Part shown: positions 51,001 through 55,001 of the stretch, piece by piece | Layout of the letters: every line of letters begins with the position of its first letter | Numbering within the stretch: position 1 is the first letter of the stretch | DNA from: Octopus sinensis | Lineage: Eukaryota | DNA: 64,000 nt | Reading direction: 5' to 3' | Assembly: GCF_006345805.1 (NCBI RefSeq) | Contig: NC_043007.1 | Coordinates: forward strand, 16,182,001 to 16,246,000 | Program-made: the position numbers and the translations under genes | The notes under the pieces: generated by a model | Seen by the model: the letters and a program-made list of their open reading frames with translations, nothing else | What the model was told of the DNA's origin: nothing | Database searches by the model: none

Positions 51001-52544
51001 ACATTGTTTTTATTGTTAGTAAGCACTTTTGTAATATAATCTCAAACTTTGTTGGTTATACCATCCCTGAAAGTCAACTCCTCCTGACATGATCAATTCT
51101 CTTTCAGTTCTAATCTGTATTGTTACATTACAACATTTCGTCAATCCAGTGTTACATAAGCTCAGATCTCTAACGTTGCGACACAGACTAATTTAATACC
51201 CAATTTTACAGCAACAGTGTTACGGAACGAAATTTCTGTTTCAATACAACTCCATATTAATTAATGCCTATAAAGGTGTCACAGAATAATTACATCAAAG
51301 TTATTATGATATCCATAGTAACATATTTAATTTAGATTATCGTTAATTTGGGCTCTGTTAATATTTACAAAGATTCTTTTTTGCAGCTTCTGTAACTATT
51401 CCACACACCGCTGAAGTCCAAACAACTCTTCAAGGTTATGATATTCCAAAAGGTACTCTCGTTTCATTCTTAATATTGGAAGCTCATTCTGATCCGAACT
51501 ATTGGGATAAACCAGAGGAATTCCGTCCTGAAAGATGGATTGATGAAAATAATGAGTTAAAGAAAAATGAGGCTTTTTTACCTTTCGGTTCGGGTAAGTA
51601 TTGTAAATAGATTCTAATGATTTAGTATATCTATAATAAAACGGTTCCCAATCGTGACCAACACAACATTTGCCTCGATCTACAGCTAGACTATCTAATG
51701 ATTGTTTTAAAACTGTATGTTAAGGGGAGATTTAATTATTGAATTGTAGAATCACCAGAGTTGGTTTGACATTAGTAAAAATGAGACACTATAAAACAGC
51801 AATCTACTTCAAATCTTATTTAAGTGCGTATTGATATTCATCACTTCAACAAAATAAGCATCAATGGTCCACTAAATACGCTACATAGAATATTTATTCT
51901 CTAAACAAATATTTGGTCATTTTTTCTCCCGAGATATATCCTTATTTCTGTGAGCAAGCCTCGATTTGTTTATCTTATTCATTTAATAACATATTTTTAA
52001 TAAAATTACTTGATTCCTCGATTTCAATTTCAAATTTATAACTTCGCGCTATGGGAAACATTTACCTCCCTTTATATTAACAGTCATCTTGAAGGCAATC
52101 CCGTGTGCTTGAATACACGGGGTACCTTCAGGATGGTTGTAGTTTCTGGAAATCCATTTTTAACATCTGACTATTGTCAGGGCGTGTGTGTCTATGACTG
52201 GAAGTCTGTTCGACTATATAAAGGGTGTAGGAGATAACAGCCAGAACATATTCACACCTAACTAAAATCAATGACGACTTATCTAATTTTTATCACTTGT
52301 ATATGATACATATTTAGCATACATAGTGTGTGTTGTTTAATTTATAACTACTGCTTTATTTGTAGGTCCAAGAATGTGTTCAGGAATGTCATTAGCCAAT
52401 ACGGAAGCTTTCCTGGCTTTTACAAACATCTTACAGAAATTTCAGTTGGAAAAACCTTACGAAACACCAATGACGGTAGAGGGCAACATGTCTGGCCTCG
52501 TTTATGTCCCAACAAATGATGATATCCGTGCAATACCATTGTGA
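29669..52544 (+). CDS. Cytochrome P450, clan 2 (CYP2-like), copy 3; intact, 8 exons, 498 aa
   Basis: Exons 29669-30035, 39433-39658, 42530-42656, 44654-44810, 47199-47335, 50767-50863, 51387-51593, 52366-52544 sum to 1497 nt in one open frame (phases 1,2,0,1,0,1,1). Motifs PPGP, WKDQR, AGTDT, EVHR, PERW, FGSGPRMCSG. Confidence 0.93.
30690..32420. mobile_element. R4/Dong-like (RLE-type) LINE fragments, scrambled and partly inverted
   Basis: RLE domain [21 protein letters not shown]...IIDAAMP...LQKAALLG at 31190-31560; RT tail [18 protein letters not shown]...DRKTRK...[13 protein letters not shown] at 31578-32159; MHGQF segment present on both strands (about 30700-30770 +, about 30945-31015 -). 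Confidence 0.8.
32600..34200 (+). mobile_element. Second R4/Dong-like LINE fragment (RT through RLE)
   Basis: [86 protein letters not shown]. Confidence 0.82.
34384..34570. repeat. (AAT)n followed by (ATT)n microsatellite
   Basis: Read directly from the sequence. Confidence 0.9.
36480..37220 (-). mobile_element. Penelope-like element, GIY-YIG region
   Basis: [27 protein letters not shown]...[20 protein letters not shown]. Confidence 0.82.
37477..37980. repeat. Fold-back inverted repeat with arms of about 186 bp and a 131-bp spacer
   Basis: 37477-37662 versus 37794-37980. Confidence 0.9.
39433..39658 (+). CDS. CYP2-like copy 3, exon 2
   Basis: [28 protein letters not shown]...[12 protein letters not shown]; 226 nt. 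Confidence 0.94.
39705..40115 (+). mobile_element. SINE family A, diverged
   Basis: Head, body and tail similar to the consensus. Confidence 0.75.
40740..42090 (+). mobile_element. Penelope-like element, degenerate RT plus GIY-YIG
   Basis: [62 protein letters not shown]...RL..WFAEHL. Confidence 0.88.
42530..42656 (+). CDS. CYP2-like copy 3, exon 3
   Basis: [43 protein letters not shown]; 127 nt. Confidence 0.92.
43130..44030 (+). mobile_element. Degenerate mariner transposase
   Basis: [52 protein letters not shown]. Confidence 0.87.
44010..44190 (-). mobile_element. Short R4/Dong-like RT fragment next to (ATC)n/(ATT)n
   Basis: [22 protein letters not shown]. Confidence 0.7.
44654..44810 (+). 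CDS. CYP2-like copy 3, exon 4
   Basis: [52 protein letters not shown]; 157 nt. Confidence 0.93.
46345..46397 (-). ncRNA. Candidate minimal type I hammerhead ribozyme (Penelope type), antisense in copy 3 intron 4
   Basis: UAUCA-CUGACGA-AGGG...CCCU-GAAA-UCGG-UC-CGAUA; stem I has one A.C mismatch. Confidence 0.5.
47199..47335 (+). CDS. CYP2-like copy 3, exon 5 (I-helix)
   Basis: [46 protein letters not shown]; 137 nt. Confidence 0.94.
47933..47967 (+). ncRNA. Candidate minimal type I hammerhead ribozyme (Penelope type), sense in copy 3 intron 5
   Basis: GUUU-CUGACGA-A-GAAC-UCC-GCUC-GAAA-UG-UU-AAAC; stem I 4 bp, one stem II mismatch. Confidence 0.5.
49990..50570 (-). mobile_element. Degenerate Penelope-like RT fragment
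   Basis: Minus strand reads [17 protein letters not shown]...[12 protein letters not shown], resembling the PLE N.F.FN...Y.Q..G..MG...ANL.M pattern. Confidence 0.55.
50767..50863 (+). CDS. CYP2-like copy 3, exon 6 (ExxR)
   Basis: [32 protein letters not shown]; 97 nt. Confidence 0.93.
51387..51593 (+). CDS. CYP2-like copy 3, exon 7
   Basis: [24 protein letters not shown]...[35 protein letters not shown]; 207 nt. Confidence 0.94.
52366..52544 (+). CDS. CYP2-like copy 3, terminal exon 8a (heme Cys)
   Basis: [59 protein letters not shown]; AATAAA at 52886-52891. Confidence 0.93.
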
Positions 52545-53269
52545 TATAATTTGGATAGCGAGAAGATATCTTTTGGAAAGTAGGGGAAAATTTTCTTCGT
52601 AGAATACTGGCAGATCCGCGATAGTAAATTATAGTATTTCTCTATGCTTTCACTCATAGTAGTTCTCCAACAATATTATTAGATAGACACACATGGTAAT
52701 ATATGTATGCTGGTATATCAAAAGGAATATCTGCGGATATGTACCATGATATATAGAGAACAGAAATAGACAAACTTTCGAGAAATATGGTGGTCATAAT
52801 GTCTTCCTTTCCCTTCGTAATTTCCTTGAGTTACACTTTTCTTTATGTTGCTAATTCCTGTATACTCCTTCGTATAATTTACGCAAATAAAACTATAAGA
52901 TAAATTATCATTTCGTTTTTGTATTGGCTTTGCAAGATTCTTTTTGTGATTTCGTGTGTTGATAGAAATTTTGTTGTGTCCAGGGAGAGACATTATGCAA
53001 GGAGTAATAACACACATACTGGCTCGATTCCGGTCCTTTTTTATTAGTCAATTGGTTAGAAATCCAACTAACTAATAGATTGTTGTTTAACTTGGTTAAA
53101 CAGTCAATCGTCTGTTTTGCTTTTGTTTGTTTGTTTGTTTGTTTTTTTGTCAAAGATCTTTCGTTGCTATTTGCAAAATGTTCGATGAATATTTTTAGTC
53201 TTTTATGGAAGCTGCGTTTGTCTGAGACATTGTTGCGCGCCAATGTGCGCGTGAGCTTGAGTGCTTGTG

Positions 53270-53510
53270 TATGCATGTAAGTACGTATGTATGTATGTAT
53301 GTATGTATGCATGCATGTATGTATGTATGTATGTACGTATATATGTATATATGTATGTATGTATGTATGCATGCATGCATATATGTATGTATGTATGCAT
53401 GTATGTATTTATGCATGTATGTATGTATGGATGGATGCATGCATGTACGATATACGTTTGTATATATGTATGTATGTGTGCATGAATGCATGCACGTATG
53501 TATGTATGTA
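53270..53510. repeat. (TATG)n microsatellite; similar tracts at 50620-50730 and 63755-63965
   Basis: Read directly from the sequence. Confidence 0.92.
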
Positions 53511-53699
53511 TACCATTATTCAGTTTAATTTCAAGATTTTTTTACCAATAGAGAAAGAGCCGGCTTCTAACCCACATCCAAAGTTCCTTCATTGGAATTT
53601 CAACATCAACAACAGGGTACTTTTTTTGTATGTATGTATGTATGTATGTATGTATGTATGTATGTATGTATGTATGTATACACACACATACATATACCT

Positions 53700-53905
53700 A
53701 TGTCTTTACTACCCACAAGGGACTAAACACAGATGGGACAAACAAGGAATCACAAACGGATTAAGTCGATTACATCGACACCAGTGCATAACTGGTACTT
53801 ATTTAATCGACCCCGAAAGGATGAAAGGCAAAGTCGACCTCGTCGGAATTTGAACTCAGAACGTAACGGCAGACGAAATACGGTTACGCATTTCGCGCGG
53901 CGTGC
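53700..53905 (-). mobile_element. SINE family B, reverse orientation
   Basis: Reverse complement of the family B consensus. Confidence 0.85.
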
Positions 53906-53924
53906 ATACACACACATACTTTTT

Positions 53925-54345
53925 ACAAAGATTTTTCGAAAATTTTCGTCAAAATTTTAACAAAAATGTTTCGTCAAAATGTTTTGAAAATTTTTCAAAA
54001 ATTTTCGTCAATATTTTTTCAAAAATTTTATAAAAAATTTTCGTCAAAATTTTGACCAGAAATTTTCAAAATATTTATGAAAAAATTTTGACGAAAATTT
54101 TCGAATTTAAAAAAAAATTTTTTGAAATCTTTCGTCAAAATCTTTTCAAAAATTGTTTCGAAAATTTTGGTCAAAATATTTTTTAATTTTTTGAAAATTT
54201 TTTTTTGATAGTTTTGGTCAAAATTTTTTCAAGAATATTTCTAAATTTGGGTTTTAATTTTTCTTAAATTTTTTTTGAAAATTCTTCTAGAAAATTTTCG
54301 TTAAAATTTTTCAAAAATGTTTTCAAAATTTGTGGTCAAAATTTT
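53925..54345. repeat. Degenerate A/T-tract minisatellite (ttttcgtcaaaa-like units)
   Basis: About 420 bp of alternating T4-6 and A4-5 tracts with cg/cgtc/ggtc cores. Confidence 0.8.
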
Positions 54346-54822
54346 TTCAGAAGGCGCCACGCGTATTTCAATAACCTTGGTTGTTATTTCATGAAAATCG
54401 ATTTCTGACGTCTGACGTTGATCAGGACGTGTGTGTCTATGAAGAGAAGTTTGTTCGACTTACAAAGGAAAGATATTTACACCTAAACTAAAGTCAATGA
54501 CGGCTTATCAGCTTTGATACAGCATTGACTACTGCTCTAAAACATTTTCAGGCTCATAGTCCTTATGTACGATGAATAAACATTAATAGTGAAATGTAAA
54601 AGCTGTGATATTTAAATTTGTTCAATGAACCTATGTTTACATTTTAATTATAAATGTATTGTGTGAGTGTGTGCGTACGTATGTGTCTGAATGTATGTGT
54701 GTGTGTGTTTGTGTGTGTGTGTTTGTGTGTGTGTGTGTGTGTGTAAATATATTCAAATTTTATCACATGTTAGCACATGTGTATGTATATCGTTTTATTT
54801 GTAACATCTGCTTTATTTGTAG

Positions 54823-55001
54823 GTCCAAGAATGTGTGCAGGAGTGACACTGGTTAATACGGAAGCTTTCATCACTTTTACAAAAATCTTACAGATATTTC
54901 AGTTGGAAAAACCTATAAAAGCACCAATGAAATTAGAAGGCAAGCAACCAGGCATCACTTATGTTCCAGTGAATGATGATATCCGTGTAACAGGATTGTG
55001 A
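54823..55001 (+). CDS. Duplicated CYP terminal exon 8b (open frame; alternative last exon or remnant of another paralog)
   Basis: Acceptor ctgctttatttgtag identical to that of 8a; same phase and length (179 nt); GPRMCAGVTLVNTEAFITFTKILQIFQLEKPIKAPMKLEGKQPGITYVPVNDDIRVTGL*; ATTAAA at 55181-55186. Confidence 0.85.

Follow-up and report, generated by a model that had tools for sequence, protein, structure and literature searches.

The closest described case of one cytochrome P450 (P450) gene encoding two complete enzymes is CYP4F3, in which mutually exclusive internal exons are swapped and the swapped segment shifts substrate preference. Its products, CYP4F3A and CYP4F3B, are called special among human P450s, as both are derived from one gene (PMC12784423). 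In this study, we analyzed a stretch of 64,000 nucleotides (nt) of the Octopus sinensis genome (NCBI RefSeq assembly GCF_006345805.1, contig NC_043007.1, positions 16,182,001 to 16,246,000 of the forward strand; hereafter, the window), in which a P450 gene, designated gene B, is followed by two homologous terminal exons, 8a and 8b. Exon 8a is the native last exon of gene B. Exon 8b, located further downstream, is probably a young, splice-competent by-product of tandem duplication, neutral or at best nascent, and not a maintained switch of the substrate pocket.

Other known processes are also relevant to this locus. Partial-gene fragments at the junctions of tandem duplications can be reused as alternative last exons, and this is a general mechanism; we are not aware of a described P450 example in which the heme-binding exon was captured. 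In CYP2 chimeras made in the laboratory, swaps are often tolerated, and specificity is shifted through substrate-recognition site 6 (SRS6). In addition, a read-through RNA of CYP2C18 and CYP2C19 has been listed (PMC12564374). An earlier note on this DNA, prepared by a model from the letters of the sequence, regarded two complete P450s from one gene as unusual; CYP4F3A and CYP4F3B provide a precedent for such an arrangement (PMC12784423). A literature search on octopus CYP2 clusters yielded nothing relevant, and no publication on the present cluster was found.

Exons 8a and 8b and the encoded proteins

Gene models in the window were obtained by mapping a full-length molluscan P450 onto the sequence; a search of a representative library returned only distant P450s and served exon mapping alone. 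The mapping yielded copy 1 (eight exons, 2403-16616), a lone fragment with exons designated 2' and 3' (22139-25881), and gene B, whose exon 1 starts at 29669. Exon 7 of gene B ends at 51593 in G|GTAAGT, so the next exon has to begin in phase 1. Two terminal exons lie behind this single donor, each with an acceptor, the matching phase, a stop codon and a poly(A) signal (Table 1). Within the window, there are only three terminal exons, at 16440, 52365 and 54822.

The earlier note had pointed to a second 179-nt exon of the same phase about 2.3 kb past 8a, and this exon is indeed found at 54823-55001, with 2279 nt from the 8a stop to the 8b start. Its further details also agree with our counts: the final 15 nt of the two acceptors are the same (ctgctttatttgtag); the heme motif GPRMCxG occurs in 8a and 8b alike, 8b being open, with no stop or indel, up to its TGA; 22 of 59 residues differ, where the note had about 22 of 58; only three codons differ purely synonymously; and an ATTAAA (55181-55186) is located 180 nt past the 8b stop. 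Overall, the two exons are identical at 141 of 179 nt and 37 of 59 residues, with 22 non-synonymous codon differences, and this likeness is well above chance (tblastn E = 5e-24 inside the window). The segments NMSGLV of 8a and KQPGIT of 8b align with ESGVGN of CYP2B4, which we take, from the CYP2B literature, to be the SRS6 turn (V477/G478).

As reconstructed from the window, exons 1-7 joined to either 8a or 8b encode a protein of 498 amino acids (aa). Both proteins match the Pfam p450 profile (PF00067) from end to end, with 395 bits for the 8a form (X1) and 383 bits for the 8b form (X2), covering positions 1-456 and 1-455, respectively, of the 462 profile positions. The Cys-pocket motif FxxGxRxCxG is present as FGSGPRMC(S/A)G and bridges exon 7 and the terminal exon, exon 7 completing GPRMCxG to F-G-S-G-P-R-M-C-x-G; the K-helix ExxR is EVHR (exon 6) and the PERF-like motif is FRPERW (exon 7). 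By sequence, the solved structures nearest to it were a CYP17 chain and, after this, numerous CYP2B4/2B6 chains. In CYP nomenclature, a protein takes the CYP2 name if its identity to named CYP2 members exceeds 40%, and the gene B product shows only 32-37% identity to vertebrate CYP2 proteins, which is below this value. By best hits, and not by the 40% rule, it is a CYP2-like (clan 2) protein. When the 8b form was used as a query, its identity to the Octopus bimaculoides protein P0156 was only 74%.

A search with the 8b form of gene B detected relatives in Octopus vulgaris, O. bimaculoides and O. sinensis, and the O. sinensis isoforms were found by opening the 90% protein clusters from this search. 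Two RefSeq proteins of 498 aa equal our reconstructions letter for letter: XP_029643129.1 (isoform X1) consists of exons 1-7 plus 8a, and XP_036363005.1 (isoform X2) consists of exons 1-7 plus 8b. The gene range of X2 on CM016869.1 (25,333 nt) corresponds exactly to window positions 29669-55001. A second X1/X2 pair of O. sinensis, derived from another B copy, is represented by P0272/P0275 on contig VCDQ01002058.1. Since RefSeq lists both protein endings of gene B as isoforms and these equal the reconstructions, the joining of exon 7 to 8b is plausible, and its annotation exists already. In the NCBI pipeline, each variant of a multi-variant gene needs full support, in the form of either one long alignment or RNA-seq from one sample (PMC5737279). 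Judging from this rule and the X1/X2 models, 7-8b splicing is likely to occur at some level in O. sinensis. No 8b-ending protein was found among the O. vulgaris models seen. Of the proposal that exon 7 can be joined to 8a or 8b to give two complete P450s with different pockets, the structural part is borne out by the exon layout and by RefSeq X1/X2, while the two-pocket function is unsupported and 8b shows no sign of being maintained.

Origin of exon 8b and its occurrence in other copies

In O. bimaculoides, gene B has a P450 neighbor, designated gene A; we reached the gene A locus through P0156, and the order is gene A, 3.6 kb, gene B (locus L002). Gene B of this species is P0156 (exon 1 from L002 10001, exon 8 at L002 30535-30711). 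Gene A has its exon 8 at L002 6198-6374, and its product ends as P0002. Window positions 54348-55162, which include 8b, are 87.5% identical to L002 5755-6526, i.e., to intron 7 and exon 8 of gene A, and this is the usual level for orthologous non-coding DNA in the region. With flanks included, identity of the 8b block is no more than 69-71% to the 8a block and reaches 78-79% to the copy 1 tail of the window; its intron part, preceding 8b, is 66% identical to the intron-7 tail of copy 1 and 71% identical to that of 8a. The reading of 8b as a tandem copy of 8a, implied by the earlier note, was ruled out by these comparisons, as the block is nearer to the copy 1 tail and far nearer to O. bimaculoides gene A. 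Copy 1 of the window was considered as the gene A ortholog and was also ruled out, being ~70% identical except in exon 6.

The region behind 8b is colinear with the region that follows gene A. In O. vulgaris, whose B copies we designate V1 to V4, V1 16184-22398 is colinear at 86-90% identity with O. bimaculoides 5755-10384, from gene A intron 7 through the intergenic region to exon 1 of gene B. On O. sinensis contig VCDQ01002035.1 (L003), the sequence continues past 8b through the intergenic region into exon 1 of the next B copy; here, L003 17939-21987 corresponds to window 26733-30819. The right-hand duplication breakpoint is at ~53680: the last O. vulgaris copy, V4, tracks the window flank to 53679 only and then runs into ancestral flank. 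Between this point and the left-hand breakpoint in gene A intron 7, the junction contains a short interspersed nuclear element (SINE)-like repeat and an AT-rich satellite, neither of which was found at either breakpoint site in O. bimaculoides. The ~220-nt SINE-like repeat is present in many copies, both in the window (among others at 61469-61691, 62082-62309 and 62968-63192) and in all related loci.

The fragment shows three properties of a tandem-duplication junction: it is orthologous to the tail of a neighboring gene, it is colinear into the next unit, and no counterpart was found within 10 kb of the last unit or of gene B in the outgroup. These comparisons point, with high probability, to 8b as the orphaned tail of gene A left behind by a tandem duplication. 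The ancestral order would have been gene A, a spacer of ~3.6 kb and gene B, as still seen in O. bimaculoides. In the lineage of O. sinensis and O. vulgaris, tandem duplication would then have multiplied gene B, with a unit reaching from inside gene A intron 7 to ~1.1 kb past the gene B stop. The tail carried along would comprise the last ~475 nt of gene A intron 7, the terminal exon and the 3' untranslated region (UTR). Such unit limits would place a gene A tail ~2.3 kb behind each B copy save the last, followed by the next B copy. Duplication of the whole A-B pair with later deletion would give the same final layout. No intact gene A was seen in the O. sinensis sequence examined.

The exon 2'/3' pair of the window (22139-22367 and 25729-25881) is situated between copy 1 and gene B and has no other exons nearby. 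Exon 2', in which a 1-nt indel shifts the frame, is similar to exon 2 of model A0A0L8HI14 from O. bimaculoides. This fragment may represent the remains of the gene A body.

The 8a-spacer-8b layout is also present in two further O. sinensis contigs and in three O. vulgaris units, so that six 8b copies were seen, three in each species. In O. vulgaris, the order of exons 5-6-7-8a-8b is repeated, and one unit is colinear with window 49935-55187 at 92.6% identity. The occurrence of the doublet in other Octopus assemblies, for which the earlier note had suggested a search, was thereby confirmed for O. vulgaris and not for O. bimaculoides, in which no 8b-like exon was found in the 10 kb behind gene B, a stretch that holds runs of N at 34395-35227 and 40213-40622. 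There was also no 8b within 10 kb of the last array copies, i.e., V4 of O. vulgaris (L008) and the copy on O. sinensis VCDQ01001926.1 (L007).

The possibility that 8b is an assembly artefact, namely contig-end sequence of another paralog joined wrongly at a gap, draws on the position of 8b, which ends 186 nt short of a 100-N gap at which colinearity stops. Moreover, the window beyond this gap does not match any 8b-downstream sequence of the other copies. However, the sequence from 8a to 8b is free of N, and the layout recurs in the two additional O. sinensis contigs and in the independent O. vulgaris assembly, with the colinearity described above extending across both exons. Consequently, 8b is for practical purposes not a mis-join, a possibility that the earlier note had raised, and we regard an artefact as extremely improbable. 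The tandem array is probably collapsed at the gap, with more units in the unplaced contigs VCDQ01002035.1, VCDQ01002058.1 and VCDQ01001926.1.

The O. vulgaris array (OX597824.1, ~12.50-12.61 Mb; L001/L006/L008) comprises four or more B copies in tandem, repeated every ~29 kb. V1 has no indel across exons 2-8, and V2 has an intact 498-aa open reading frame (ORF). The O. vulgaris model P0001 (203 aa) is drawn over 33 kb, with its start in V1 exon 5 and its end at the V2 stop, and P0159 (400 aa), on the same chromosome, is without exons 4-5.

Table 1. Features of gene B, the duplication junction and exon 8b in the window
Feature	Position	Strand	Details
Gene B (copy 3 of the earlier note), exons 1-7	29669-30035, 39433-39658, 42530-42656, 44654-44810, 47199-47335, 50767-50863, 51387-51593	+	all junctions AG/GT; ORF open
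Exon 8a, native terminal exon of gene B (Cys-ligand loop, L helix, SRS6, stop)	52366-52544	+	179 nt including TGA; phase 1
Ancestral 3' flank of gene B	52557-53679	+	aligns to L002 30761-31851 (85.5%); ends in (TGTA)n microsatellites, 53268-53511 and 53627-53679
AATAAA, likely poly(A) signal of 8a transcripts	52886-52891	+	342 nt past 8a stop; kept in O. vulgaris V1 and V2
SINE-like repeat inside the junction	53691-53910	+	copies elsewhere in L001 at 92-93% identity
AT-rich satellite filling the junction	53926-54347	+	periods of ~12/24/83 nt
3' part of gene A intron 7, including the 8b acceptor	54348-54822	+	left-hand duplication breakpoint; ortholog in L002
Exon 8b, very probably the orphaned terminal exon of gene A	54823-55001	+	179 nt including TGA; phase 1; RefSeq last exon of gene B isoform X2
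3' UTR-like flank of 8b	55002-55187	+	ATTAAA at 55181-55186
Assembly gap	55188-55287	.	100 N; begins 186 nt past 8b stop; colinearity with all other copies ends there

Constraint, transcript processing and rival explanations

The two terminal exons are not equally preserved across copies and species. Each of the eight B copies detected in O. sinensis and O. vulgaris has an intact 8a-type ending, whereas 8b is disabled in two of its six copies. In V2, the 8b acceptor is changed from AG to AT, and use of the next AG downstream would break the frame; in V3, 8b has a 1-nt deletion through which the final 13 residues are cut off. The remaining 8b copies (4/6) are usable, and the gene B ORFs of V2 and V3 that end in 8a are both intact (498 aa each).

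The divergence of 8b from its O. bimaculoides ortholog (8.9%) is close to that of the adjoining intron (8.8%) and 3' flank (5.8-8.3%), with a ratio of non-synonymous to synonymous substitution rates (dN/dS) of ~1.5. When changes were polarized using four paralogous exons as reference, 11 changes in 8b were assigned to its own lineage and one to the O. bimaculoides lineage, with four ambiguous; the corresponding numbers for 8a were 9:9. This pattern fits relaxed constraint after orphaning, and it could also reflect adaptation of 8b to a new gene body. That a 179-nt exon would stay open by chance over the inferred time is, by a rough and uncomputed estimate, less likely than not but by no means improbable. 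Exon 8a itself is variable: its sequences in the six copies differ at ~14 non-synonymous sites and one synonymous site, the SRS6 codon at 52500-52502 specifies V, I, S or A among copies and N in O. bimaculoides, and dN/dS relative to O. bimaculoides is ~1. These values suggest diversifying selection or weak constraint on the whole of gene B. As a test of function, dN/dS has too little power here, the counts being small and 8a itself scoring 1-2.

With regard to processing, 8a should be the default ending, because it is proximal, has the same acceptor and is followed by a conserved AATAAA at +342. For 8b to be used, transcription would have to pass the 8a poly(A) site, and 8a would have to be skipped. 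Since the acceptor, frame, stop and UTR of the tail have been kept and its orientation is the same, read-through transcripts could be spliced from exon 7 to 8b. The resulting protein would be a chimeric P450 of 498 aa, composed of residues 1-439 of gene B and the Cys loop, L helix and SRS6 of gene A (440-498). Because CYP2 chimeras of this kind are often tolerated, an active enzyme would be plausible. The ancestral AATAAA of gene A, ~400 nt past its stop, is lost in three of the five copies that can be read at this site; in the window, the gap conceals it.

Several observations weigh against regarding 8b as a mere by-product. All three O. sinensis 8b copies, as well as that of O. vulgaris V1, are intact and have AG acceptors, and both 8b lesions rest on one O. 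vulgaris assembly. The ATTAAA past the 8b stop is a derived feature common to all six copies, the homologous site of O. bimaculoides being ATTACA. Among the six copies, variable sites are fewer in 8b (7) than in 8a (~15). Finally, dN/dS of the native 8a is also ~1-2, so rate tests cannot separate neutral evolution from diversifying selection in this family.

In a rival reading, 8b would be a functional, selected alternative last exon, with a regulated 8a/8b choice that supplies two active P450s with different SRS6 and substrate pockets per B copy. RefSeq has X1/X2 pairs at two loci under a rule that demands full support for each variant; 8b is intact in four of six copies, including every O. 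sinensis copy; its Cys-pocket motif is complete and the Pfam match is full length; the differences between 8a and 8b fall on the SRS6 turn of CYP2B4; the quick, mostly non-synonymous change of 8b could be adaptation to its new gene body; and all copies have the derived ATTAAA. This reading is opposed by the decay of 8b in two of the three O. vulgaris copies next to intact 8a ORFs, by its divergence at the rate of the flanks, and by the lack of a doublet behind O. bimaculoides gene B or the last array copies in the stretches searched. In addition, the proximal 8a, with its identical acceptor and its own conserved AATAAA, should win, and an 8b ending is absent among the O. vulgaris models seen. 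We consider a selected switch unlikely. Its narrower form, co-option in O. sinensis, with regulated use of 8a and 8b in each B copy giving two active P450s that differ in the heme-proximal loop, L helix and SRS6, and with 8b kept in O. sinensis while decaying in O. vulgaris, is quite unlikely.

At the other extreme, 8b could be a silent relic that is never productively spliced, X2 being an annotation artefact produced, for instance, by reads that multi-map to nearly identical copies or by transcripts from another locus. The pattern of decay and the neutral divergence would fit such a relic, as would the O. vulgaris models seen, none of which ends in 8b, and the window does contain other relic exons, i.e., exon 2'/3' at 22-26 kb with its frameshift. 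However, the NCBI rule for alternative variants is strict, X2 models exist at two independent loci, and 8b has the same acceptor and tract as the used 8a, only 2.3 kb further on the same strand; moreover, an intact gene A that could act as donor was not seen in the O. sinensis sequence examined. A silent relic is in our opinion very unlikely. The explanation that we favor as probable remains that of a young gene A tail at a duplication junction, competent for splicing from exon 7, that is neutral or at best nascent.

Other features of the window and comparison with known systems

Exon 4 of copy 1 (7956-8111) has, relative to gene B, a 1-nt deletion near 8022 in a run of A (CATAAAGAAACG > CATAAGAAACG), which shifts the frame into a stop. 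Copy 1 is either a pseudogene or affected by a homopolymer assembly error. In intron 2 of gene B (40900-42040, + strand), there are ORFs with reverse-transcriptase-like (YIDD) and GIY-YIG-like (IYSITC...YIGQ) motifs. A Pfam scan of these transposon-like ORFs gave no match; the motifs suggest, as an impression, that they are a retroelement fragment.

Should the 8b isoform be both produced and active, gene B would provide a rare natural example of a single P450 gene that yields two complete enzymes through a swap of the exon bearing the heme cysteine and SRS6. The birth of such a switch would then be visible, because the origin of 8b can be traced base by base to a breakpoint in the intron of a neighboring gene. 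Co-option, if true, would represent an exon-shuffling route to combinatorial pocket diversity in a tandem P450 bloom, caught early. At present, these data serve above all as a caution. Tandem duplication can leave behind, as a passive by-product, a spare exon that is intact, perfectly phased and equipped with a conserved motif, and the annotation of an isoform does not show that it functions. Where P450 clusters evolve fast, dN/dS cannot distinguish a by-product from a functional exon, since an exon that is certainly used also scores ~1. Overall, exon 8b offers a neat and datable exon capture in a P450 bloom, already annotated and probably without selection.

Compared with CYP4F3A/B, gene B is similar in that one P450 gene would give two complete enzymes through a choice of homologous exons. 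The exchanged exons would cover a substrate-recognition site, as in a CYP4F3-type switch, the assignment to SRS6 following the CYP2B literature. Unlike gene B, CYP4F3 has a shared heme-binding end and a proven function; in gene B, the exchanged part is a terminal exon with the heme cysteine, L helix and SRS6, taken from a neighboring gene, and its function is unproven. The case of CYP2C18-CYP2C19 is similar in that same-strand neighboring paralogs of CYP2 type give a joined RNA. It differs in that the two genes there are otherwise complete and the cited example is a circular RNA, whereas here the downstream gene consists of its last exon only and the isoform is a coding one of 498 aa.

The locus fits the pattern of reusable fragments at duplication junctions: the unit starts inside one gene and ends past the next, so that each copy but the last is followed by a 3' fragment that read-through transcripts could splice, and no such fragment was found within 10 kb of the last copies or of gene B in the outgroup. 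Finally, laboratory CYP2 chimeras were engineered and assayed; like them, X2 would be a chimera, in this case a natural one, in which B(1-439) is joined to A(440-498) and the parental paralogs are ~63% identical in the swapped part.

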